From assembly GCF_003918875.1 (NCBI RefSeq), contig NW_025767214.1, positions 620,001 to 684,000 of the forward strand: a stretch of DNA of 64,000 nucleotides, given 5' to 3'. Both the position numbers and the translations under genes were made by a program. This document shows, one piece after another, positions 30,713-48,345 of the stretch. The stretch is from Haliotis rubra. Lineage: Eukaryota. Under the pieces are notes generated by a model that worked only from the letters and a program-made list of their open reading frames with translations, searched no databases and was not told where the DNA came from. Position 1 is the stretch's first letter; each line of letters opens with the position of its first letter.

Positions 30713-33700
30713 ATGAAAGTGCTGCGCAGCCTATTGTTGGTGACGTTGCTTGGGTTGTTGTTTGTACAACTTGTCCACTGTGAGGATGCAGTTGATGATG
30801 AGGATGAAGAAGATGATGATGGAACTGTAGAAGAAGAAGATGACGATGCAACGGAGGAACCACCAAGAGAAAAGGTATGTAATATAGGGTTATAAACATG
30901 CTGAGCTGTTGTGCTCACTTTTCACTGTGCAGGTCATATGTGCAACATTTACGTAGCTAATGATATGATAAGACCAAGAATATCTTGTATTAAGAAGAGT
31001 TAAACCCTTTGTAAAAACATTTTGAATCCTGAAGTTAGGGCACCAATAGTACAATCTATTTGCTGTGTTGTGTAGAATTTACTAGTGGTGGTCCGATTAA
31101 TTGAAATAATCGAAGATTGGTCGCAATGACTAAACAACCAAGCAATCGATCATGTTTTCTAATAATCGAACATAAACAATTTTGGAACACTTTTTTGCTT
31201 TAACAATATTTTTCACAAGGTTGGTTTTGTCTGTTACATTTCATAAGCACTACCAGCTCGTTCCAAGTCAGGAATGAATTTATCTTAAAGACTTCAGCTA
31301 ATGTATGTTCCTAACATACTAGTCATCCTTTAAAGGTGTAAAATTTGCAAAAGCACTTTGTGAAGTTTGCAAAAAACTTGCAAGAACTAGTTATTTCTTT
31401 ATTTTTTTGTGCATTAACAAACATAACCAGGAATATTTGATAAGTAATGCCAACCAATTATTTTCGATGATTGACTGGTTGCAATGAACCAAACATCAAT
31501 TATTATGAGATTGTAACCAATTCCCAATACCTTTCTTAGAAGTCACTATTATTTACCAACTGCTGATACAACATAATGACCTTAGAAAATGACTGTTATT
31601 ATCAGTTTGTGTAGGGACTAAATTGGTTCAGGTTTTAACACAATACTAGTGTATTGCAACTAGGAAAGGTTGATTTAATATTTGTTCTTTGATATTTGCT
31701 TTCAGCCACACTACAAAAAACCAGAAGTCAAAGGAAGTTACTTTTTTGCTGAGCCTTTTGATAACAAAGCAGAATCTATGAAAAGGTATGGTATGACTGC
31801 TGTGTCTCAATGTTTTAGTTGTTAACGTTCACTCAATCACTTATTTTTGTTTTCAAACTTCAGTATGTTAAGTAACTACCCATCCAACCCCAAAACACAA
31901 AGGCAGCCTAACATTATGTTTGAATTTTATGAAGATGAAAAACCAGATTCACTGATATGTAGGACATTTGATTGATTTCTCTCATTCTGTAGTTGCATTG
32001 ATATGCAGGATGTTTTTTGTGGTATACACAATATATGTCCATCACAGTGTTATCCTGCTAGTTCTATGTAAGTGATTCATTTGGTATCATTCGATTTCAG
32101 ATGGGTTCATTCTCAGGCCAAGAAAGATGGAGTAGAGGAAGACCTTGCCAAGTATGATGGTGAGTAGGTCATGGAAATGTTTAGTCAACCAGGGAAAGGC
32201 ATATAGTATGTTTAGACAACCAAGGAAAGGCATATAGTATGTTTAGTCAACCAGGAAAAGGCATTTAGTATGTTTAGTCAACCAGGGAAAGGCATATAGT
32301 ATGTTTAGACAACCAAGGAAAGGCATATAGTATGTTTAGACAACCAAGGAAAGGCATATAGTATGTTTAGTCAACCAGGAAAAGGCATTTAGTATGTTTA
32401 GTCAACCAGGGAAAGGCATATAGTATGTTTAGTCAACCAAGGAAAGGCATATGGTATGTTTAGTCAACCAAGGAAAGATATATAGTATGTTAAGTCAACC
32501 AAGAAAAGGCATTTAGTATGTTTAGTCAACCAAGGAAAGGCATATAGTATGTATAGTCAACCAAGGAAAGGCATATAGTATGTTTAGTCAACCAAGGAAA
32601 GGCATATGGTATGTTTAGTCAACCAAGGTAAGGCATATGGTATGTTTATTCAACCAAGGAAAGGCATATGGTATGTTTGGGTGGTCAGGCTCATTGACTT
32701 GGTTGACACTTGTCATCATATCCTGATTGTGTAGATTGATGTTCATGCTGTTGATCACTGGATTGTCTGATCCAGACTTGATTATTTACAGACCGCCGCC
32801 ATATGGCTGGAATATTGCTGAGTGTGGCGTAAAACAAATCTCACTCACTCATGTAACAGTTTCAAATTGACATGTTAAGTCAAGAGCATATAACAACTTA
32901 AATGTTTTTGTTGTCCAGGAAAATGGGCCTTTGAAGAGCCGAAAGAAAACCCACTGACTGGAGATCTTGGTCTCATTCTCACTGTGAGTATTAAGTGATT
33001 ATAGCACACAAACTAATGGTAAACTTCAACCTTTCAAGTGAGACTATGTATGATATTCACTGATGATAACAGAGGGCTGACTGTAGGAGCCCTGTTGAGG
33101 GACTAACTTACCAACTGTAGTGTGAGGACAGTTTGGAGATTGAAGGTGTGTTTTGAGGTAGCTTCATGATTTCAGCTGTGTGTGTGTAGGTCACAACCAA
33201 GATTTGATAAGAACTTAGAAACTGATTATCTCTAGCTCTTTACCAAAGTATTTTAAGAGTGAGTTGTCCAATTAATTACATGTACACTTAAATATATCTT
33301 CCTGTGATCTTTGTTCCAGTCAAGAGCCAAGCATCATGCTATTTCTGCCAATCTCAACAAACCATTTCAGTTCAAGGACAAGCCCTTAGTAGCTCAGTAA
33401 GTAAATGTTGTGATAGTGCTGGTGCAACTGATGGAATAATCAGTCAATCGGTCTTTCAGTTGATCTTGCTTGTGTCACCGATTGTCGATGTGCTCTAGAA
33501 CTAATCAATGTTCATTAGAGGTGTGATGATACAGAAATTTCACGATACGATACGAATCGCAATATCTTGGAACGATACGATTCGATTCGATGCATATCAC
33601 GATATGCTATCTTTAGTTATTTCCTTAAAAAAGGAAAGCGTATTTTGATAGCAAGTAACAGTGTAAATTTTGACATACTTGTCAATTTCTAGTGAAAATA

Positions 33701-36700
33701 GTAATTCTAATACATATCACGATACGAAAAAAGTATCAATATATTTATCGTCGGATAAAGTATCGCGATTATCGATACTACGATATATCGTCACAGCTCT
33801 AATGTTCATCAAATTAAACTTTATAAAGTATGTTTGTTATTATCCCCTGCTGCTCCTATGTATGCATCAGCGTCCGTATATATGTACATATGTCCAGATT
33901 CTTGTTAACACGATATCTCATGAACTGTTGTACCCAATGTCTTCAAATTTGGTGACAGTCTACATTGGGGATTACGCAGACTCCAGTCGATTTGGGTGAC
34001 CTTGACCTTATCTTCAAGGTCACCATGACACTTTGACCACTGTTCAAACTCTTGTTAACGTGATATCTCAACTAGTAAATATGTTATAGTATTTCATTCT
34101 TCTTTAGCGGCAGGGGACATTGCCATATTAGTGGCAAACACTTGTTGTTATGTTTGTTATATCAAGATATAAACGACTGATGTTGTTTCTTGACTCATAC
34201 AACTGCCATGTACACAACATGCTCACATACATGCCTCAACAGGAAGTGTCCTCGATGGTAGTATTAATTGGTGCCTGTTTCATTTGCATAATGTTATGAT
34301 TGTGTCCTGTTATTGTCAACTTGAGTTTTGTGGTGGTGTCACAATCGATTACTGACCTCCGATTAACGAACTGAATATTGTGAGTAATAACCAGCTCAAC
34401 ATTGTGTGTTCAACTCCAGACCAGATTTGATAGTTGTGGCTGTCATTTCTGAAAACATGCAGGCAGTTGGTTGTAATTATTTACAGGAGTTGTAATGTTA
34501 ATTAATGGTGATTTTTCATTTGGGTTAAATTTGACAGGTGGTTGCACAACTGATGTTTGTGATTCTCTCTACTTAGATATGAGGTGCGGTTTCAAAATGG
34601 CATGGACTGTGGTGGAGCATACGTCAAACTGCTGTCACAACAACAAAAACTTGATTTGGTAAGTGAAGTCCATATTCTTAAATGTGCTTCTATGGTAAAT
34701 GTTTAATGATCTTTTGGCATTATTTGTGGCCTTGGTAAATTCCTGATGCTTTTGAATCTTGTAGATATTGATTTGTGATTAGCCATGTTGTAGCAGAAGA
34801 CATTTGTTACTTTAATCCAGTCTAAACTTGAACTATATCATCCCAGAATTATACTGCTTTCATCAAGTACGTTTGTAGTTTAAATAAACTTAAGGAATTT
34901 TGTTGGCATTAATGTCATGGTTTGCCTTGTATGCTTTATCGAATATTTTATGAATATTCACCAGTGGATTAATAATGTTTTCAGAAATCCTTCCATGACA
35001 AGACCCCCTACACTATCATGTTTGGACCTGACAAGTGTGGCCTGGATCACAAGGTATTGTTGCTTTGATTGTTGCTAAAGAGGAAATTATATGCACACAT
35101 CTTTAATGGGTATCATGTTGATAAAAATGCATGTACAGATAGGGACGCTTGAGAACAAAACATCCTGTTCATGACCATGTATGGTTACTTATTATTAGGG
35201 CTGGGACGATACACTATGTCACGATACGATACATATCGCGATATTATACCTGCGATACGATCGCGATACGATACGTATCACGATACATACACCTTGAAAG
35301 AATGGCACAGTATTAATGATTTAAAATGATTTATTTCAAGGTATTTGTGTATAACAATAGCACTATTGTAATAAACAAGCAAGAAACTCTATCATACTCG
35401 CGTATTTGTCTCTAAATAAGTACTTTAACATGTTTAAGATATAACTGTTATGAAAAAAGGTGTATCGTTTTGTATCAACGATGCGATAGCTGTATCAAAC
35501 TTACATGTATCGCAGTGTATAGATGTATCAGTTAATTTCCCATCCCTACTTATTATTGTCTTGTTTTCATGTATGATATTGTTGAATTAAGCGCAATCTC
35601 AGTGGGTTTGGTGGGATGATCACACTGACTGGTACCCTGGATGTAAGGTCGTTGTTTATAGTATCATTCACTAGATTGTCTAAACAAGATTGCGTACTGG
35701 AAGCTGTCATATAGCTCTTGTTTGGGACTTGTATTTGTGGTGAAATTCATATACTTTGTTTGTTTTTTGTGTAGCTACACTTCATCTTCCGACACAAGAA
35801 CCCCAAGACTGGTGAATTTGAGGTGAGCTATAAACCTTTTTGATGATCATTCTCATTGAGCTATGTTGAAGCACATGAGTGTCAAATGTTGGCCCATCAA
35901 TATCAAGGCCAAGATATTTTAGTGGATGCTTGATGTGTTCACCCATTGCTAGCTGTGAAGTCGTAGGTGAAGCAATATTGAATGGGTACACATGTTTTGG
36001 GACAGGCAATGGTTTTGGGAGTCTATAAAGTTGCATGAATAAGGAGAAAATGTCATGTCCCCTGTTATTGTTACAGGAGAAGCATGCGAAGAAGCCATCC
36101 GGCAATCTGGACAGTTACTTCACAGACAAGAAGACCCATTTGTTCACACTTAGTACGTTACAGACAATTTGTTATTTCAAATACTCACATTAAGATTTGG
36201 ATGTTTGGTTTACTTGATGTGTTCAGGTGAAATTGCACGATGAGTTTCCCAAAATAAAGAATATAATGTGTCTTGATTGTGTTAATATGGATAAACCCAT
36301 GTTTTAATGAAATACCACAATGATGAATTGTGATACTTTATTGATTTTCTCAGTGGGATAGCCTAGTGGTTAAAGTGTTCGCTTGTCACACTGAAGACCC
36401 AGGTTCAATTCCCCACATGGGTGCAATGTGTGAAGTCCCATTTCTGTTGTCACCGGCCATGATATTGCTGGAATATTGCTAAAAGCGGTGTAAAAACATA
36501 CTCACTCGTACTTGCTTTTCTCAGCCCTCTGAATAATTTAGTGGTATGAAAACAGAAAACAATGTAGTTACCATCTTTTTTCAGTTGTGAATCCTGACAA
36601 CAGTTTTGAGTTCCTCATTGACAATGCTGTGGTCAACCAAGGAAGTCTCCTGGAAGATGTGAAGTGAGTGAGTCTTGTACATAGATCAAGGATGCTGGGG

Positions 36701-39700
36701 TAGAGTTGATCTCAAGTAACCAACACGTTTGTTAGACTCGATGAAATGGGTTAATTGTTACAGATAAAATCCAGATAAGCTGTGCATTTGTGTGATCTGT
36801 AAAATATATTGGTGATACCAGCTGGTTTTGAACTTTTTGGAATCAGATATGAAATATGTTAAAAATCCCAATTATGTATCAACACTGGAATTCAACTACC
36901 ATAAGGCCTAAAGAAATGTTGTGGTTCTGATTACCCGACCGACCCTTGAATCCTGGTGCCGACCCTATTTTTCTTTAAGCGGTATGAATAAAATAAGCAT
37001 TCAGATACTATTGTTTTTTTCCTGGCACTGACAGACATCGGTCATTCTGTTAGAGAAAGTCGACATGATGGCCACAAGGTTGATTAAATAAACAATTACA
37101 CATTGATAAATAAGTGTAAGTGTAAAAATACCATATAGGCTTACCAAAGGGCCAAAAATTAAATTGAATTCCTAAAGAAAAAATAACAAATGTGAATTGT
37201 AGCTTGTAACTACTCAGTTTACACATGGCTCAAAAGGTATCTGGAGCCATGTTGATATGTGATTATTTGAACATTTACAGGGTATCACTATGTAAAATAA
37301 ATTGCTTGCATCCATTTCCAGCCCTCCAGTAAATCCCCCTAAGGAAATTGAAGATCCCAATGACAAGAAGCCAGCTGACTGGGATGAGCGTGAGAAGTAA
37401 GTTAAATCTGTCAGGCACTTGCTCACATCATGTCACACCCTTTTGTATTATGTGAGGGGCACTTGGTCACATCATGTTACATCCTTCTGTGCTGAGTGAG
37501 GGGTACTTGGTCACATCATGTTACATCCTTCTGTGCTGAGTGAGGGGTACTTGGTCACATCATGTTACACCCTTCTGTGCTGAGTGAGGGGCACTTGGTC
37601 ACATCATGTTACATCCTGTGTTGAGTGAGGGGCACTTGGTCACATCATGTTACATCCTTCTGTGCTGAGTGAGGGGTACTTGGTCACATCATGTTACATC
37701 CTTCTGTGCTGAGTGAGGGGCACTTGGTCACATCATGTCACACCCTTTTGTATTATGTGAGTGGCACTTGGTCACATCATGTTACATCCTTCTGTGCTGA
37801 GTGAGGGGCACTTGGTCACATCATGTTACATCCTTCTGTGTTGAGTGAGGGGCACTTGGTCACATCATGTTACATCCTTCTGTGCTGAGTGAGGGGCACT
37901 TGGTCACATCATGTCACACCCTTCTGTGTTGAGTGAGGGGTTCTTGGTCACATCATGTCACACCCTTCTGTGTTGAGTGAGGGGCACTTGGTCACATCAT
38001 GTTACATCCTTCTGTGCTGAGTGAGGGGCACTTGGTCACATCATGTTACATCCTTCTGTGCTGAGTGAGGGGTACTTGGTCACATCATGTCACACCCTTC
38101 TGTGTTGAGTGAGGGGTTCTTGGTCACATCATGTCACACCCTTCTGTGTTGAGTGAGGGGCACTTGGTCACATCATGTTACATCCTTCTGTGCTGAGTGA
38201 GGGGCACTTGGTCACATCATGTTACATCCTTCTGTGCTGAGTGAGGGGCACTTGGTCACATCATGTCACATCTTTCTGTGCTGAGTGAGGGGTACTTGGT
38301 CACATCATGTCACACCCTTCTGTGTTGAGTGAGGGGCACTTGGTCACATCATGTTACATCCTTCTGTGCTGAGTGAGGGGCCCTTGGTCACATCATGTCT
38401 CATCCTTCTTTGCTAAGTGAGGGGAGACTGGGTCACATCATGTCATATCCTATCCTGCCTCCGTGGTGTAGTGGTTAGAGCGACCGCCCAGAGAGCAGAA
38501 GGTCGCGGGTTCGATCATGCCAAAAGACGTTAAAATATGGTACTTGTTGGTCCCTGCCTGGCGCTCGGCATTAATGGGTACGACAAGGACTGGTCGGCTC
38601 GGAGTCAGTATAATGTGTCTGAGTGGGGTATTCATGCTTCACTGCGGCATGGTATCTCAGTGGGCTAGCACTATAAAACCAGCTTAAGTCTGGGCTAGTA
38701 CAAGCAGACCCACATACACACGCATGCACATCGTCATATGAGGGAAATATTCTCAAGCACGACGTTAAACCCAATTTCACCTCACTTCACCTCATATCCT
38801 GTGCAGAGTGAGGGGCACTTGGTCACCACATGTCATATCCTGTGCAGAGTGAGGGGGACTGGGTCACATCATGTCATATCCTGTGCTGAGTGAGGGGGAC
38901 TGGGTCACATCATGTCATATCCTGTGCTGAGTGAGGGGGACTGGGTCACATCATGTCAGATCCTTCTGTGCTGAGTGAGGGGTACTTGGTCACATCATGT
39001 CAGATCCTTCTGTCAGATCCTTCTGTGCTGAGTGAGGGGGACTGGGTCACATCATGTCAGATCCTTCTGTGCTGAGTGAGGGGGACTGGGTCACATCATG
39101 TCAGATCCTTCTGTGCTGAGTGAGGGGGACTGGGTCACATCATGTCAGATCCTTCTGTGCTGAGTGAGGGGGACTGGGTCACATCATGTCAGATCCTTCT
39201 GTGCTGAGTGAGGGGGACTGGGTCACATGTCATATCCTGTGCAGAGTGAGGGGGACTGGGTCACATGTCATATCCTGTGCTGAGTGAGGGGGACTGGGTC
39301 ACATCATGTCATATCCTGTGCTGAGTGAGGGGGACTGGGTCACATCATGTCAGATCCTTCTGTGCTGAGTGAGGGGGCTGGGTCACATCATGTCAGATCC
39401 TTCTGTGCTGAGTGAGGGGGACTGGGTCACATCATGTCAGATCCTTCTGTGCTGAGTGAGGGGGCTGGGTCACATGTCATATCCTGCCCAGAGTGAGGGG
39501 ACTGGGTCACATGTCATATCCTGTGCTGAGTGAGGGGACTGGGTCACATGTCATATCCTGTGCAGAGTGAGGGGACTGGGTCACATCATGTCATATCCTG
39601 TGCAGAGTGAGGGGACTGGGTCACATCATGTCATATCCTGTGCAGAGTGAGGGGACTGGGTCACATCATGTCATATCCTGTGCTGAGTGAGGGGGACTGG

Positions 39701-42700
39701 GTCACATGTCATATCCTGTGCTGAGTGAGGGGGACTTGGTCACATCATGTCATATCCTGTGCAGAGTGAGGGGGACTGGGTCACATGTCATATCCTGTGC
39801 TGAGTGAGGGGACTGGGTCACATGTCATATCCTGTGCAGAGTGAGGGGGACTGGGTCACATGTCATATCCTGTGCTGAGTGAGGGGACTGGGTCACATCA
39901 TGTCATATCCTGTGCAGAGTGAGGGGACTGGGTCACATCATGTCATATCCTGTGCAGAGTGAGGGGACTGGGTCACATCATGTCATATCCTGTGCAGAGT
40001 GAGGGGGACTGGGTCACATGTCATATCCTGTGCAGAGTGAGGGGACTTGGTCACATCATGTCATATCCTGTGCAGAGTGAGGGGGACTGGGTCAGATCAT
40101 GTCAGATCCTTCTGTGCTGAGTGAGGGGGACTGGGTCACATGTCATATCCTGTGCAGAGAGGGGGACTGGGTCACATGTCATATCCTGTGCTGAGTGAGG
40201 GGACTGGGTCACATCATGTCATATCCTGCGGTGCATGGTGAGTGAGGGGTAGCCTAGTGGTCTTGTCTCATGCCGAAGACCCAGGTTCGAATCCTCACAT
40301 GGGTACAATGTGTGAAGCCCATTTCTGGTGTCCATCGCCATGATGTTGCTGGAATATTGCTAAAAGCGGCATAAAACCAAACTCAGTCAGTCCTGATGGT
40401 GTGGGCCATTGGACTCTGAGATCCACTATTGATTATTTACAGGCCACTGTCATTTAAATATTTGTAAAGTATTTCTGAGTGCAGCATTAAACAAAGAGTT
40501 AAACAATTACATGCTTATTACATGTATGTGGGTGTATTGTGTTCATTCCGTTATATCTCTGATGTTTTCAGAGGTAACTACAGCTATGTACAAACTTTGA
40601 AATATTTTGTATTTTTTCAGAATTCCTGACCCTGATGCCTCCAAGCCCGATGATTGGTAGGTGCCCGGGGTTTCTGTCAACCAGATTTAAGTTGTGATCC
40701 CTCCATAGAGTTACTTCTGTATTTAAACAGTGACTGATGGACAGACCATGAGACGAGCAGGCAGACATTTTATGAGCTTTTCACATAATATATATACTTT
40801 TATGTAGAGTAAATGTCATGCATAATGTTATTATATATTAGCAATTCCTTATGGAATACTGAGAGACACTTGTTATTTAACTTGCTATTAAAAATATAAA
40901 CAGCAGTGTCGTGTGAACTGGACATATTTAGCAATGTAACTCGTTCTTATGGCATTATAAAATGTAGTAGACGTTTGCATGTGTCCACTGGACATTAACC
41001 ATATCAATTCTGAAAGAGATTAACTTTATGGACAGTGAATGTTGAAAAAAGTTTAAAGGTAAATTGACAAATCTCACAAAAAAGTAAAACATATATGTCA
41101 CCTTCCACAGCACTGATATCTCACCAGTGACAACACCTGGTTTTGTAATCAAATAAGGGTAACACTGCATTGAAATTATGCCAAGGCTCTTCATAATCTC
41201 CAAGACATTAGAACTGTTATGGACAAGTGAAGATCCGGGGTAGAATAGGTCTTCAGCAACCCATGTGCTTGCCATAAAAGGCGACTATGCTTGTCGTAAG
41301 AGGCGATTTAACGGGATTGGGTGGTCAGCTGACTTGGGCACATGTCATTGCAGATTGATGCTCATGCTGTTGATCACTGGATTGTCTGGTCCAGACTCGA
41401 TTATTTACAGACCGCCGCCATATAGCTGGGATATTGCTGAGTGTGGCGTAAAACTAATCTCACTCACTCACTCACTTCTTAGAACTGTTATGTAGTTTTT
41501 TTGCACTGTAGCTAGAGATGGCACTTTTTGTTTCCATGCCTGGTACTCGATGTGAAGGGGGTAAAACATAGTGTAGTAGTGAGTGTAATGTATCATTTGT
41601 AGACTGAACTACAGTCTCTTACAAGCAGCCATATTTACTAGCAGTCAAACATGCTGGCATGAACTCACTTTACAACTGAAATAATCTTCAATATGACATG
41701 AAACACCATTCCACTTCAGGTCACCTTTGAAAATATAACGGTAATGATTAGCTTAGCTTTGGACCGTTTTATTCTGTGGGACTAATGTACTATCCAAAAT
41801 AAGAAACATAACGAAATATGTGAACACTGACATCTGCTACATAACCAAATACTGATATAACCAAATAATGTAATTTTTGCTGCGAATTGTCAACTGACAA
41901 TACTATCTGTGAGATGTGTTATTTATGAATGTGTATGTTACTAGGGATGAGTCTGAGCCCGAGATGATCCGTGATCCGGATGGAGTGAAGCCTGATGGCT
42001 GGCTGGATGATGAACCCCTGTTGGTGCCCGACCCAGCTGCAGACAAACCTGAGGACTGGTGAGTAGGGGTCTTTGTTGTTTGTTGGCTGCTATAGTGCTT
42101 CTGTTGACTCTAATGTTTCACTGTGCAAAAGGATCGGTGGGGTATCTAAGTGGTTAAAGCGTTTGCTCGTCACGCCGAAGACACGAGTTCGATTCCCCAC
42201 ATGGGTACTCTGTGTGAAGCCTATTTCTGGTGTCTCTTTCCCCCTTTTTCTTGATATTTAATTATAATTGTCATAGAGCAGTCTTGGCAATATGATTTCT
42301 GTAAAGTCCAGTTATTTATATAAATGTATAATAGTAATTGAGCTAAGAATTGTCCTTAACATTCATAAACTGATAACATTAATATGGTTTGAGAATCTTC
42401 AACAATTGTGTTCCAGGGATGACGATATGGATGGAGAGTGGGAGGCACCTCTTGTTGGTAAGTGAAGTTCGGGAATAGAATCAAAATTCTTGGATGATGA
42501 AGTGTTTGAAAGATATGTCCTGTTTTAAAATCAACAAAAGTTGCATAGCTCTTTGTCATGTGTGTTCTCTTATTACATTCACCCCATGTGTGCTGAGCAT
42601 AACTTTCTGTCATAGTAATTGTATACATTAGTGTGTGAGTTTACTGGCCAATACATAGTTTTACTCCCCTCAGGCTTCTAACTAGTGGCTTAAGTTGAAG

Positions 42701-45700
42701 ACGATGTATTGAAATCCTCTGTATGTTCATGGGGCACAGGTGTCACAGACGTCCCAGTTTGCTGTAAAGAGTTATCTCCCTTGTGCATGCAATACACCCA
42801 ATTCTGGTTCAGTCAATTATGTTTGTAGGTATGTTGGAATCATTCCTGTGTTGTTCAAGCCTACCCTCCAAGCTTCACACACTGTCATAGTAAGTGACTA
42901 GGGCAGTGTGAAATGTGTAATCAAAACTCACTCACTCCCTCTATATGTTTTCCAGATAACACCAAGTGTAAGGAAGCCCCAGGGTGTGGAGACTGGCAGC
43001 CCGAAAACATCAAAAACCCCAACTACAAAGGGAAATGGTCTGCTCCAATGATAGACAACCCCAACTACAAGGTGAACTTGCTCATGGAGTTACATAGTTG
43101 GCGCTTATACACTGAAAACTATGGTCTTACAATGAATTCATCTCAAATTATCTGCTTATTGTTTTCCTAGCTAAATAGAAACTAAAAAAGAGCATGCGTG
43201 CTTCATATTCCCAGCCTCATGACACCTCATTAAAAATCCTAAATGTAAGCATGCAGCTTGTGTACGTCTTATGGTTGAAATTGTCTAGGATTCCATACCC
43301 ATCTCAGAGCCCTCATATAGATGCAGCATGAGAGATAGTTTAATAAATTTATGGACATCTTTAGGACGTTTTAGAGGAATGTCCTAGGATATATATTCCA
43401 AATAGAAACCCTGAGTAATGGTAGTTTATTAGCATTTCAGTTGTGATATTTGTGGCATCAACAAAATATATCAGTGGAGTTCCCAGGCTGGAAAGTTTAT
43501 TGTTGATAAATAGCTTTTAACATGATTATACAATGTCCTCCATTGCCACCAGCTGGCCGTGTCCACGAATTTGGCTCTCATGTTGTCATAAGATAGCTGC
43601 TAGCTAAAGAGGCATTAATTCACTTGCATAATCCTGTGATTAAGTCAAAAGCATGTGTGTTTTTCTCTTCAGGGCATCTGGAAACCACAAGTCATTCCTA
43701 ACCCAAACTACTTCGAAGACGTGCAGCCATTTAAAATGACCCCCATTGTAAGTACCTAGTGCTACATCATAGCAAGGTTCCTGAGTAACATTTGTTAGAG
43801 CCAACAGTACTAGCATACACCTTGTCATTGCAACTGTAGCACACTTGAGTAAACTGGCATCTATCAGCTGATATTTTACTGCACTGAACACATATGTCAA
43901 ATGTCACAAGTCTGCAGGTTATTACAACTGCTATACTAACGGACTTGACCGTGTTGGCGGTACACCTGAACGTTATACATTATAATAAAGAAGTTGTATG
44001 GCCATTATACTTTCCCTGTTGTTCATGACACCAGCTTCTCTTTGCCACTCAAAGAAGTTAGTTGGAACTTATAATTGTGGCTATAGGTACAGTCACAGAG
44101 TAGAAGTGGGGTGTATTTATTTGTTAACTAGAGAGTATTTCAGCCCTCAAATGGTCATGGTCTTAGTAACATTTTACAGCCAATTCTTATTACTGTTGTA
44201 ATAATCTGTCATGTCTTTTATGACTTAACTCCACCTGTTTGTTTTAGAATGCTGTCGGTCTGGAGTTGTGGTCAATGAGTGATGGAATCGTGTTTGACAA
44301 CTTCCTCATCACAGATGACCGAGTTGTGGCAGAGGAGTATGCAGAACAAACATGGGTTTTGAAAAATATCGAAGAGAGGGCATCCTCTTCTGCTGGGGTA
44401 AGGACGCAATTTCTTTACAACAGTTGGGCAAATCTGTCATTTGTACATAAAATACCCAAATCTTTTGTCCATTAAGTTGTTACATTGTTTACTAGTTCAT
44501 AACTATTCATTCTTATAATGAGAAGCCTAACTGGAAAAACTATTTATATAATGTTTCAACAGACTGTGACAACATCTTCCCATTTGTTCCTAAAACATGA
44601 TAGACTTTACAAACTGTGATAAAGACTGACAATTTAGTTGGTAATTAGAGCGGATATTGTTGACAGATTTTCCCAACTCTTCCATTGACATTATGAATTA
44701 CTATTTCTGATTCTGTCTCCTTAACTTTCACAGTCATGTGAAGATTAAAATTTGCATGAAAGCTTATAAGTAGTATTATCGAACAAAATTGTAATTGTTA
44801 TTACTGGCCTGTAATTTCAAAATTTTAAATTATATCATATCCCCCATATTGTGAAAAAACCCATCTTCCTCTACTTTCAGCGTTCCGTAGTAGATGCAAT
44901 AAAACAGGCCACTAATGAACGTCCGTGGCTATGGGCAGTGTTTATAGTGGTAGTTATCTTGCCCATAGTCCTTATTGTAGCCTATTGCTGTATATCAAAG
45001 GTAAGACATGTGTTGCCACTTTTAGACTGTCTGCATGGCTAGAGGCTTCCCTCACTCCAGCTCAGGTTACTGCTGCACAAAGGCTTGACGTTAGGGATCT
45101 GTTGTACACTTTCATGATCTGTATGTACCTGTGTTCAGATACAGGCAGTCCTGACATGAACAAAGGTGAATGAACAAATTCTATCAACTTGAGTGACAAG
45201 CTATCACTGTCATATCTGAAGTATTGGTTATGACAGTCGTAGCTTGTTCAGCTTGTGAAACATGACAATGTTTCTACTTTCAACTTGAGCGTTTGTTCTC
45301 ATTTTCGAATCAGTTGACTTAGATTTGATGATCGTGTAGATCAGCTGAGTATCAGCTGTTCGAGCCTCTAGAGCAGCACTGACCTTGGCACAATATTTGC
45401 ATGCTGTAAGATACCCAGTTGACAATCATGTCCACGTTACACAGGGATTTTGGACCACACTGAAGTCTGCGGCAGATGACCGCCCGTGGCTGTGGGCCGT
45501 GTATGTGGTGGTCCTCCTGATGCCTATCGTCCTGCTGTCTATATGCTTGTGCCCTAAATCAGGGCCTGTCAAGGTAACAGGCTTCTCCTTGTCGTAGATC
45601 ACACAGAAGAGGACAGATTGTTCCAGGGTCCCTGTAATGTTGTTAATTGACAGTGTGGCTTTGAGCAGCTACCAGGGCAGAAGTACAACATGGGAATATG

Positions 45701-48345
45701 TCAAAAGTTGGAGGTTCCATCCGCAGGTTTCAGACTCACACACTCACAGTATGGTATATGTTACAAAAAGCGTTCCTTTGAAACCATGATTAATTTAATA
45801 ACCCAAAATTTACCCTGGACAGCATCACTGGTAGGTACAGTCCAATGTAACAGAAATTTGCTCTACTCTGACAGTGTAGGTTTTTTTAAAAACAAAAAAA
45901 CCAAATACTTTTTGGACAGATTGTGTGTACCCTGTTAGGTAGATGAGTGTTCAAGTGTCTCCACTGAATGTAGTCTCAATGTGGTAGGTATTTTGTATAG
46001 TCCTTCAGCTATAGTCAGCTGATCATCCTGATCAGGTAAGTGTAACAGGCAGTTGTTAGATTTTTCGTAACTTGCTTATTTACTTCAGTTTAATCCTGTA
46101 CGTTCTGTGTTACAGTAAACTAGGGACATGTTCTAAAATAACCATGAAAACTTCGAGTTGATGGAAGGGACTTTGAACTGTTCTCCAGTTTACTGTACGG
46201 CAGTTGTGATTCAGATTAGTTGTGAAATGATCTGTCCTGACTGTTTAAATATGACATCTGTATGTGTTGGTTTCTAGATTTGATGACTACCTCATGCAAT
46301 TTAACTTTATTTACCAGCTTTTTGTTCCTCAGTGGATTGGATGTTGCAAATCTTGTGTTAAATTCTAATGCACTTGCTCACTTTTTTCAATATCTTTTTC
46401 ATGATTGTAAAAATAACATTCATTACTTTCATAATTTGTAGCAGATATACACTCAACAAAGACATAGTTTGTTGAAATTCTAATTTGTAAACTTGGATGT
46501 CTTTATCACACGATTCGAGACATGTTTAATTAATTACATAATGGTTGAGGAGAAGTATGAAGGTATTATATTCATAGTTACATATGACACCATATCCCAT
46601 AGTATCCATGACAACTTACATCAATGATCGTAAAGTAAACGAATGTTTTGTTGAGTAAAGTGTTCTAAGAGTTGATAACTGTTGGATTGTTAGTCGTATA
46701 CTGATATCACACGCTTCATCATTTCAGCCTGAAGATGTAGATGCCCAGAGAAAGAAAACAGACGAGCCATCACCTGATGATGAGGAGGAGGAGAAAGAAG
46801 ATAAAGCAGAGTCCTCTGGTGACAAGAAGTCAGTCGGACCAGGGGGAGATAACAAAGGGAAAACATCAAAGTCAGATTTAAATGCAGCAGCAGTAAGTGG
46901 ATGTTTACTTTGAGATACACATTCAATCAAAAACACTGTAACTGCACAGTTATGGCCCATTAGGTTTTCTGTGGGCCTCCCTTTTCATAGTCAGGAATGA
47001 CATAAAATGACATAAAATAATACTGGCAGTGCACTGATATTGAAAAACTGACATAAGTAGGTCCGAGTGCAGGTCTGCATAGGTGGTCAGTGCCTCGTAT
47101 GTGTATGGGCAGACTGGGTTCTCTACTTGCCTGACAGAACGTACATGTATACATTTCAAAATATGTTCTAATGTCTTTCTTATAGAATTATGCTGAGAAG
47201 TTTGTTGTAGTTTGAAGAATAGTAAAAAGTGGAAAAGCGGCAAGTTATTTTAGCTGATGTAGCAATTGTGAAGCTACTTCGTCAGTAACCCACAATGGAC
47301 TACTGATGGAGATTCTCTGACAACAGAAGGCTACTGTACATACATGTTATGAAGGGATAGTTCCTATTTCCTCAGACTATTTCCTTGTGTATTTGTGGAA
47401 GACTAGAGGGAAGAAGAATATGAGTTTATGGCCTTCGAGGTTCTGGTAGAGATACGGTTGTTATGTGTATTTTACCTCTTGTCTTGAAACTGTCAAACTT
47501 CTGAATAGGCATTTACAAACTTACATGAAATTGTTGAGATATGCTGACTTAGCAAAACAGTGTTCTTCCTTAATCGCTGATGTATGATGGCTGTTTTATA
47601 GGATGAAGAAGATGATGGTGATGATGAAGATGCAGATGAAGAAGAAGAAAGTGATGAAGTGAAAGAAAACAAATCTAGCTCACCTCAGTAAGACCTTTCA
47701 TTATGTTGAGCTTCATTTATTGTAAGCATTAGTTACTGAGAGTAGCCACAATAGATTTGCTGAATGACTGAAAGGTTATTTGCTTAAGTGGTTAGTGGTT
47801 TTAAGGCACTATTTAGTATGTTGAATCACTCAGAGTGAATCTATATGTGTGTGAAGCCTCTTTCTGAGGTCCCACGCAATGATGTTCCTGAAATATGGCT
47901 AGAAGATGGCAAGCATCCTGGTCACTCACTCACTCGATCACCTGTGGAGATCCGGGTTAGATTTGGTCTTCAGCGAATCCATGAGGCGACTAATGGGATT
48001 GAGTGGTTGTGCTTGCTTTCTTAGTTGACACATGTCATCGTACCCCAACTGTGTCGATCAATGCCATGATGTTGATCACTTGATTGTCTGGTCCAGACTT
48101 GATTATCCACAGAAAGACATACATATAGCTGGAATATTGCCCAGTGTGGCATTAACAACAAACTAAAACCAAAAAAACACACACTCATTCCACTCCCTCA
48201 CTTCATCATATTGTTACTTCATAGTAACATGAAAGCTTCCAAAACCTACAAGATGATAGAGTAGACCCTCTAGTTTTGTGATTTTCTGACACTGTGTATT
48301 GTTTTCAGGAAATCTCCAAGGAGGAGGAAGACCCGCAGAGAATAA
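30713..48345 (+). CDS. CANX: Calnexin (signal peptide, lectin domain, P-domain, TM, acidic tail)
   Basis: Exons 30713-30874, 31706-31785, 32101-32159, 32919-32983, 33320-33396, 34577-34658, 34985-35053, 35775-35822, 36077-36152, 36585-36663, 37322-37396, 40621-40656, 41945-42058, 42417-42457, 42956-43071, 43673-43747, 44248-44397, [44881-45000 or 45445-45573], 46728-46892, 47602-47687, 48309-48345. Motifs [46 protein letters not shown] and C-terminal [10 protein letters not shown]. Confidence 0.97.
32173..32678. repeat. 31-bp minisatellite, about 16 copies
   Basis: Unit TGTTTAGTCAACCAAGGAAAGGCATATAGTA, starting about 15 bp after a calnexin donor. Confidence 0.95.
32678..32850 (+). mobile_element. 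SINE-like element, family 2 (5'-truncated)
   Basis: Matches the 3' two-thirds of 20151-20390 and ends in (ACTC)n. Confidence 0.85.
33516..33801. mobile_element. hAT-type MITE with CGATA subterminal repeats
   Basis: TIR TAGAGGTGTGA / TCACAGCTCTA; 8-bp TSD ATGTTCAT. Confidence 0.88.
33836..34146 (+). mobile_element. Helentron-associated (HINE/DINE-1-like) non-autonomous element
   Basis: Subterminal inverted repeats TATCCCCTGC / GCAGGGGACA, 3' hairpin TTGCCA..TGGCAA, terminal CTTGTT, internal TGACCTTGACC motif. Confidence 0.6.
35196..35548. mobile_element. hAT-type MITE with CGATA subterminal repeats
   Basis: TIR TAGGGCTGGGA / TCCCATCCCTA; 8-bp TSD CTTATTAT. Confidence 0.88.
36354..36508 (+). 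mobile_element. tRNA-derived SINE, family 1
   Basis: A box TAGCCTAGTGG, B box GGTTCAATTCC, shared 3' tail. Confidence 0.85.
37412..40228. repeat. Long minisatellite (about 38-44-bp units, about 55-60 copies) interrupted by a SINE
   Basis: Left unit TGAGTGAGGGGCACTTGGTCACATCATGTTACATCCTTCTGTGC (44 bp); right variant TGAGTGAGGGGGACTGGGTCACATCATGTCA(T/G)ATCCT(TCT)GTGC. Confidence 0.95.
38452..38791 (+). mobile_element. tRNA-derived SINE, family 3 (Meta/MESC-like central domain), inserted in the minisatellite
   Basis: Head GTGGTGTAGTGGTTAGAGCG..GGGTTCGATC; core CCAAAAGACGTTAAAATATGGTACTTGTTG..CTGGCGCTCGGCATTAA; tail GACGTTAAAC..(TCACC)n; flanked by TCATATCCT on both sides. Confidence 0.8.
40246..40391 (+). 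mobile_element. tRNA-derived SINE, family 1
   Basis: GGGGTAGCCTAGTGG..GGTTCGAATCC..GCTGGAATATTGCTAAAAGCGGC. Confidence 0.85.
41226..41475 (+). mobile_element. SINE-like element, family 2
   Basis: Matches 20151-20390; possible TSD TTAGAACTGTTATG on both sides (about 41208 and 41479). Confidence 0.85.
42136..42235 (+). mobile_element. tRNA-derived SINE, family 1 (3'-truncated)
   Basis: Head and body match 54354-54513. Confidence 0.75.
44881..45000 (+). CDS. CANX: Calnexin transmembrane exon A (alternative)
   Basis: ctactttcag|...|gtaaga; 120 nt, phase 0/0; [40 protein letters not shown]. Confidence 0.85.
45445..45573 (+). CDS. CANX: Calnexin transmembrane exon B (alternative)
   Basis: ttacacag|...AAG|gtaaca; 129 nt, phase 0/0; [43 protein letters not shown]. 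Confidence 0.85.
47785..48200 (+). mobile_element. Tandem SINE family 1 (about 47785-47935) and family 2 (about 47941-48165) in the last calnexin intron
   Basis: Degenerate matches to both consensus sequences, each followed by an ACTC-rich tail. Confidence 0.75.

Follow-up and report, generated by a model that had tools for sequence, protein, structure and literature searches.

Tandem-duplicated exons that are spliced in a mutually exclusive manner are a well-known kind of alternative exon. In Drosophila Dscam1, exons 17.1 and 17.2 encode alternative transmembrane segments of a single-pass protein and are thought to direct it to different membrane territories; in SNAP-25, the mutually exclusive exons 5a and 5b shift a palmitoylated cysteine cluster; and in alpha-tropomyosin, exons 2 and 3 exclude each other sterically, the branch point lying too near the upstream donor. 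Here we describe a pair of this kind in the calnexin gene of the abalone Haliotis rubra, which lies in a 64,000-nucleotide (nt) stretch of DNA that we refer to as the window (contig NW_025767214.1, positions 620,001 to 684,000 of the forward strand; coordinates below count from the first letter of the window). Two adjacent exons, A and B, each encode a whole membrane anchor, and splicing picks one or the other.

The pair resembles Dscam1 17.1/17.2 in that its exons are tandem and homologous, are used one at a time, and encode the transmembrane and juxtamembrane parts of a type I protein whose ectodomain and most of whose tail stay constant. It also differs in several ways: firstly, calnexin is an endoplasmic reticulum (ER)-resident chaperone, not a surface receptor; secondly, the calnexin pair is spiralian and far older than any single genus; thirdly, both calnexin modules keep a cysteine pair next to the membrane, and a difference in localisation between the calnexin isoforms is something we infer. 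With SNAP-25 5a/5b the calnexin exons share similar lengths and a difference in cysteine spacing (CC versus CxC in calnexin). Unlike SNAP-25, which has no transmembrane helix and uses the cysteine cluster as its sole anchor, calnexin swaps a whole helix together with both of its flanks.

In mammalian calnexin, the anchor is tilted by a mid-helix proline (Pro494), and DHHC6 palmitoylates Cys502 and Cys503; acylation alters tail orientation and half-life and shifts the protein among three sites, namely the ribosome-translocon complex, rough ER and the contacts between ER and mitochondria (PMC9913998). In mammals, ER location and partners are argued to depend on the anchor with its two acylated cysteines rather than on the chaperone domain, an argument tested only by mutation and by changes in acylation. 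There, one anchor exon serves and pools are set by reversible acylation and phosphorylation; the abalone gene adds a second, spliced anchor, exon B. The natural pair presents two complete anchors on an otherwise identical protein, conserved in at least three phyla and expressed at similar levels. As a natural swap experiment it bears on the contribution of the transmembrane segment of a chaperone, on the effect of CC versus CxC-Pro on acylation and tail orientation, and on the existence of two calnexin pools in invertebrates.

The calnexin coding region spans 30713–48345 on the forward strand, as do all features given below, and comprises 22 coding exons with A and B both counted; the H. rubra calnexin-like isoform X1 (P0271, 606 amino acids) matches the window at 100% in 21 exon pieces that run from 30713 to 48342. 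The encoded protein has a signal peptide, a lectin domain, P-domain repeats, a single anchor, an acidic tail and a basic C-terminal retrieval-like motif. KPEDWD and GxW motifs are visible in it, and the calreticulin family (PF00262) was recorded for all calnexin homologues found. The last lumenal constitutive exon (44248–44397, ending ...ERASSSAG, donor gtaagg) is joined upstream by RNA (43747>44248) and downstream to A or B. Exon A, the canonical-type anchor (44881–45000), is used in RefSeq isoform X2 (P0270), and exon B, the alternative anchor (45445–45573), in isoforms X1 and X3. Either one joins the first cytosolic tail exon (46728–46892, donor at 46893), which is followed by a second, acidic tail exon (47602–47687, donor CA/GTAAGA, with the RNA contig extending beyond) and by a last coding exon, read from the sequence, that carries the basic ER-retrieval-like end and the stop codon (48309–48345). 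The C-terminus thus encoded has a basic RKxRRE-like motif, as in the mammalian plan. A further annotated protein, isoform X3 (P0272, 569 amino acids), contains exon B and ends three residues past ...SDLNAAA. It has neither the acidic end nor the basic retrieval-like motif and so points to an alternative 3' end beyond 46892.

Exons A and B lie next to each other in the one gene, separated by an intron of 444 nt. Exon A has 120 nt (40 codons), is preceded by ...ctactttcag and followed by gtaaga; exon B has 129 nt (43 codons), is preceded by ...gttacacag and followed by gtaaca; both are phase 0/0 and stop-free. Each encodes a lumenal juxtamembrane stretch, the motif [ED]RPWLWAV and a 22-residue hydrophobic helix with a central proline, and each places a cysteine pair on the cytosolic face (AYCCISK, hence CC, in A; ICLCPK, hence CxC, in B). 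Sixteen of 39 aligned residues are the same, RPWLWAV, the proline and a cysteine among them, and nucleotide identity is 51%, with 10 of the 16 conserved codons differing synonymously. The two peptides cross-match each other's exons in other loci (E 1e-7 to 1e-10), and the resemblance between A and B is not due to chance, since each exon resembles its orthologues in other phyla more closely than A and B resemble each other. A and B are tandem homologous, frame-neutral exons, each coding for a whole membrane-anchor module. The original prediction, made from the letters of the window, had named two anchor exons with canonical splice sites, phase 0/0, no stops and a shared motif, and the exon sequences, together with RNA joints for the boundaries, bear this out in every detail.

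To follow the use of the two exons we relied on assembler contigs from four RNA runs of H. rubra, all from one study with tissue unspecified, placed on 41900–47800. The joints 44397>44881, 44397>45445, 45000>46728 and 45573>46728 were present in all four runs, each with GT..AG ends, whereas neither 45000>45445, which would join both exons, nor 44397>46728, which would skip both, occurred in the contigs of any of the four. The typical assembly bubble consisted of a 177-nt contig (29 nt, exon A, 29 nt) and a 186-nt contig (29 nt, exon B, 29 nt) between common flanks. Depths of A and B were 18.9 and 22.4 in run X1 (flanking contigs 33 and 35.9), 19 and 17.1 in run X2 (31.4 and 33.3), 7.4 and 7.9 in run X3 (where the flanks were merged with A and B), and 18.2 and 24 in run X4 (38.7 and 41.8). 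The two depths add up roughly to that of the flanks, with each exon holding a share of 43–57%, so that A plus B account for the depth of the gene. Splicing of H. rubra calnexin thus picks A or B, at about 1:1 in the four samples, and yields two calnexins with the same lectin and P-domain chaperone part and the same acidic tail on different anchors. The mutually exclusive use that had been proposed from the sequence is what the four one-exon junctions and the additive depths display. Forms with both exons or with neither, which the prediction had also raised, were absent from the contigs of the four abalone runs, although contigs may miss rare ones.

We considered that the choice may not be strictly exclusive, and that a form with A and B (a two-helix hairpin anchor with a lumenal tail) or with neither (a soluble calnexin) is meaningful. 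Both forms would be spared frame-dependent decay, as the exon lengths are multiples of 3; models with A and B exist in RefSeq and older sets for Ostrea, Crassostrea, Mytilus coruscus and Lingula; and an Octopus model (X4) stops before the anchor. Set against this are the missing joints in all four runs, a flank depth that A and B already account for, the possibility that the A+B models are ab initio products, and the nemertean Tubulanus, whose A–B intron, at 46 nt with a likely branch point ~21 nt from the donor, leaves no room for A to be spliced to B. We regard meaningful non-exclusive use as quite unlikely. The in-frame two-helix gene models themselves (P0172, P0275, P0301, P0278 and P0286, from Ostrea, Magallana, Mytilus coruscus and Lingula) are probably prediction artefacts.

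How widely the pair occurs was assessed by a profile search, which returned 120 named calnexins, and by cluster look-ups that recovered sister isoforms. Two anchor types recur. The A-type reads …S[VI]VDA..DAT.[ED]RPWLWAV[FI]…LPIVLI[IV]AYCC…, and the B-type has the near-invariant residues AVY…LLSIC.CP[KR][SA]GP[IV]K, with …W..L..AA[ED]. in its N-terminal part. Isoform pairs of A and B are annotated for one gene in the gastropods H. rubra (X2 with A, X1 with B), H. asinina, Patella vulgata, Physella acuta and Littorina saxatilis, in the bivalves Ostrea edulis, Magallana gigas/angulata (also Crassostrea), Dreissena polymorpha, Sinanodonta woodiana and Mytilus, and, outside the molluscs, in the brachiopod Lingula anatina and the nemerteans Tubulanus polymorphus and Lineus longissimus. 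Six genomic loci (H. rufescens, H. asinina, M. gigas, Lingula, Tubulanus and a mollusc, L008) share the order lumenal exon, A, B, tail, and in all of them every one of these exons is phase 0 and a multiple of 3 in length. A search with the exon-B protein alone returned one fragment only (P0151), which led to a caenogastropod B exon; the caenogastropod contigs with the A exon and with the B exon belong to the same series of assembly accessions and do not overlap, so linkage between them is not established. A region-restricted search with the Lingula B exon gave no candidates, and the contigs retrieved with several fragments of the lumenal exon ended before the anchor exons.

Over 43 anchored columns, mean identity was 0.64 between A exons, 0.63 between B exons and 0.36 between A and B (0.35–0.44 for A against B within a species), and over the ten juxtamembrane residues it was 0.77 between B exons and 0.14 between A and B. 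CC is invariant in the aligned A exons, whereas in B exons only the second cysteine is invariant and the first is C or W. Identity is higher within a type than between types. The duplication therefore predates the split of these phyla, and the pair goes back at least to the ancestor shared by molluscs, brachiopods and nemerteans. A maximum-likelihood tree placed the A exons in one clade (support 81/82), which groups (94/90) with the single anchors found in flatworms, ecdysozoans and deuterostomes. The B exons of molluscs and Lingula formed another (96/98), and a single B clade was not rejected (approximately unbiased test, p-AU 0.40). Exon A corresponds to the ordinary calnexin anchor (…AYCC…), and exon B is a distinct module. 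Exon A shares with mammalian calnexin the RPWLW motif, the mid-helix proline and the cytosolic-face CC followed by basic or serine residues.

Among the three abalones H. rubra, H. rufescens and H. asinina, the A and B peptides are identical, and nonsynonymous divergence (dN) is 0 for both exons. Synonymous divergence (dS) is 0.035–0.11 for A and 0.06–0.20 for B, against 0.25–0.34 for the upstream constitutive exon, and the intron beside each alternative exon contains conserved islands of 90–120 nt. Low dS and flanking intron islands are typical marks of regulated alternative exons, and both exons are under strong purifying selection. These results agree with the original prediction, which had read the synonymous differences between A and B as an old duplication with both copies selected: the pair occurs in Mollusca, Brachiopoda and Nemertea. 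The steps that it had proposed for checking this also came out in its favour, both exons being found in the same A-then-B order in other mollusc and brachiopod calnexin loci, and the per-exon estimate among the three Haliotis species giving a dN of 0 for A and for B.

These data bear on one alternative, namely that there is a single real isoform, the other exon being splicing noise or a duplicate that is decaying or out of use. The published mollusc calnexin complementary DNAs (cDNAs) are indeed each of a single form, that of the oyster A-type (P0298) and that of the periwinkle Littorina littorea B-type (P0389), and the scallop calnexin paper speaks of no isoforms. This explanation is difficult to reconcile with the roughly equal depth of both exons in four RNA runs, with their intactness and a dN of 0 in three Haliotis, and with type-specific orthologues across three phyla, and we consider it extremely improbable. 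One consequence is that mollusc stress studies of "the" calnexin followed one isoform or an unresolved mix, as the A-type oyster cDNA and the B-type periwinkle cDNA illustrate.

The A/B pair is already in automatic RefSeq annotation for H. rubra and many other species. No paper describing calnexin A/B anchor exons was found in the open-access library searched, and neither a 2023 calnexin review (PMC9913998) nor the scallop paper mentions isoforms or splicing. The arrangement thus stands in the databases but lacks a description in papers. The original prediction had known of no description, which agrees with that search; as isoforms X1 and X2 of RefSeq show, it does not extend to public annotation.

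What might the two anchors do? One calnexin gene, spliced with A or with B, places the same chaperone part and tail on two anchors, by which a single chaperone would most likely be divided between two pools. Such pools would differ in acylation geometry, CC on the one hand and CxC with a Pro-rich turn on the other, and in the partners that they meet in or beside the membrane. Two cysteines lie at the cytosolic end of the helix in A as well as in B, as would be expected of DHHC6-type substrates. Apart from the cysteine spacing, the isoforms differ in a serine in the helix of B and in a tyrosine of B that replaces phenylalanine after WLWAV; B also has a conserved P-[KR]-[SA]-G-P turn, which adds three residues before the common tail. 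From its pattern of conservation, the constraint on the juxtamembrane part of B exceeds what a plain anchor needs.

Alternatively, the anchors may be interchangeable, the pair persisting through partitioned expression or as a splicing-regulatory device. Consistent with this, RPWLWAV, the mid-helix proline and two cysteines are kept in both exons, and A:B is near 1:1 in the sampled runs. However, residues specific to each type have been retained across more than three phyla, chiefly in the C-terminal half of B with its P[KR][SA]GP, the juxtamembrane identities given above separate B sharply from A, plain anchors usually drift freely, and arthropods keep a separate and very different second anchor exon. 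On balance we find interchangeability unlikely and favour two functionally distinct anchors.

Several routes by which exclusivity could be enforced can be set aside for abalone. Frame-dependent decay is out, both exon lengths being divisible by 3; incompatibility with U12-type splicing is out, all donors being U2-type (GTAAG/GTAAC); and steric exclusion is out, given an A–B intron of 444 nt with a branch-like TTGAC ~24 nt before exon B. In this last respect the abalone gene is unlike alpha-tropomyosin exons 2/3, as are those of oyster, Lingula and L008: in these four the A–B intron has 243–483 nt and an ordinary branch site close to the acceptor, and is long enough to make steric exclusion inapplicable. 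The 46-nt intron of Tubulanus, by contrast, follows the same steric logic as alpha-tropomyosin.

A further possibility is that long-range RNA pairings compete, as in docking/selector systems, and so impose exclusivity. The window does contain inverted repeats, and its A–B intron folds strongly (z score -3.8 versus shuffles). In addition, the exon A donor region (45001–45021) is predicted to pair with 45416–45441, just before exon B, in a stem that closes the predicted folds of the A–B intron in three Haliotis with one compensatory change. Yet the duplex between 45329–45352 and 46011–46034, which spans exon B, and that between 45105–45125 and 46024–46044 both collapse in H. rufescens and H. asinina, and we rejected them as conserved elements; the strong folding of the intron was likewise rejected as a robust trait, with z scores of -1.6 and -1.1 in these two congeners. 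The donor/acceptor stem is weak (shuffle fractions 0.02–0.10) and is absent in oyster, Lingula and Daphnia. No single site that pairs alternately near each exon, the three-way complementarity of docking/selector systems, was found, and pairwise duplex scans among the conserved intron islands gave nothing beyond a z score of ~ -3. We therefore judge exclusivity through RNA pairing to be improbable. In the intron before A, a separate stem has its 5' arm at 44414–44439 and its 3' arm at 44661–44686; these form the core of a wider pair of 32-nt arms (44408–44439 and 44661–44692) at 78% complementarity. This core, with a stem of 17 bp, closes the predicted fold, and all three Haliotis retain it, apart from a single change of G-C to G-U.

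The choice of exon is probably governed by trans-acting factors that act at the conserved islands in the introns next to A and B. Within the window, UGCAUG occurs 33 nt downstream of the exon A donor (45032–45037) and 46 nt upstream of the exon B acceptor (45398–45403), both sites being present in all three Haliotis, and also 127 nt upstream of exon A (44753–44758), a site shared with H. asinina and lost in H. rufescens. Three UGCAUG within 150 nt of the alternative splice sites compare with 0.23 expected (P ~0.002). The oyster gene has UGCAUG 39 nt after A and AGCAUG 41 nt before B, L008 has UGCAUG 37 nt before B, and the caenogastropod has GCAUG 8 nt before B. This arrangement would fit position-dependent control of the Rbfox type, in which a site after an exon activates it and a site before an exon represses it, and the conserved GCAUG elements are the best candidates for the control of exon choice.

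Together, these data make it probable that calnexin in H. rubra carries an ancient, exclusive pair of anchor exons that sorts the protein into two pools, with the choice under trans-acting control. Several points weigh against this interpretation. Firstly, the RNA evidence comes from the contigs of one study (four samples), and contigs drop rare variants, so that minor forms with both exons or neither may be missed; A:B was near 1:1 in all four runs, with no tissue or stage difference seen; and RefSeq holds models with both exons in Ostrea edulis (632 and 634 amino acids). Secondly, Lingula and Tubulanus have no GCAUG close to the exons, and the caenogastropod contigs have no such element downstream of A; moreover, GCAUG control alone fails to explain why A and B are never joined, or why A is skipped when B is used. 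Thirdly, a switch in palmitoylation, localisation or partners between the isoforms is argued by analogy with mammalian calnexin.

Arthropod calnexins have an alternative anchor exon of their own, annotated as RefSeq isoforms in Daphnia magna, D. pulex, the damselfly Ischnura, the leafhopper Macrosteles and the horseshoe crab Tachypleus (P0315, P0334, P0371, P0354 and P0374). Like the spiralian exons it is phase 0, has ~120 nt and swaps the anchor between the same two constitutive exons. Unlike spiralian B, it has no cysteine pair and ends in ...Y[IV]W[FY]L[WR][RK]R (…YIWFLWRR), and in Daphnia magna (L017:3008-3390) it lies upstream of the ordinary exon, whereas spiralian B lies downstream of A. 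We found no support for homology with spiralian B in the exon order of Daphnia or in tree grouping; the tree has 43 columns and therefore does not settle the relationship. The arthropod exon is probably an independent duplication; if so, this solution would have arisen at the anchor of calnexin more than once.

Vertebrates have a paralogous calnexin gene, calmegin. A broader and decidedly tentative scenario would have spiralians (with A/B) and arthropods independently evolve exclusive anchor exons and keep them for >500 million years, while vertebrates would instead use calmegin and reversible palmitoylation; B would then mark a partner-specific pool (e.g. translocon-bound versus contact-site or smooth ER), under cell-type control of the GCAUG/Rbfox type. 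We consider this possible, though at rather less than even odds.

A number of further observations concern anchors in other lineages. Octopus (P0291, O. sinensis X3; P0289, O. bimaculoides X2) has an A-type isoform together with a divergent alternative anchor (…AAEDNPWLIVTYGMIIVIPIILMSLYIISRGG…) that has no cysteine and in which a short hydrophobic C-terminus replaces the acidic tail. In a compact genome (L002:9983-10612; Logan SRR23372228), the only anchor is fused to the last lumenal exon and is B-type (…LLSVWCCPNSGP…); by its sequence, this lineage seems to have kept the B module only. In H. rufescens (L013:17309-17764), the last lumenal exon has its acceptor and initial ~50 nt repeated in about eight tandem copies with a 55-nt period, directly upstream of the real exon; this repeat occurs neither in the window nor in H. 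asinina.

Two repeats lie in introns of the window's calnexin gene. A short interspersed repeat at 42097–42293 drew stacked RNA contigs with many different flanks and a summed depth of ~30,000, and ARAGORN found no transfer RNA there. A calnexin intron is filled by a 2.8-kb minisatellite (37414–40228) that consists of two related arrays, with units of 40–44 nt in ~60 copies.

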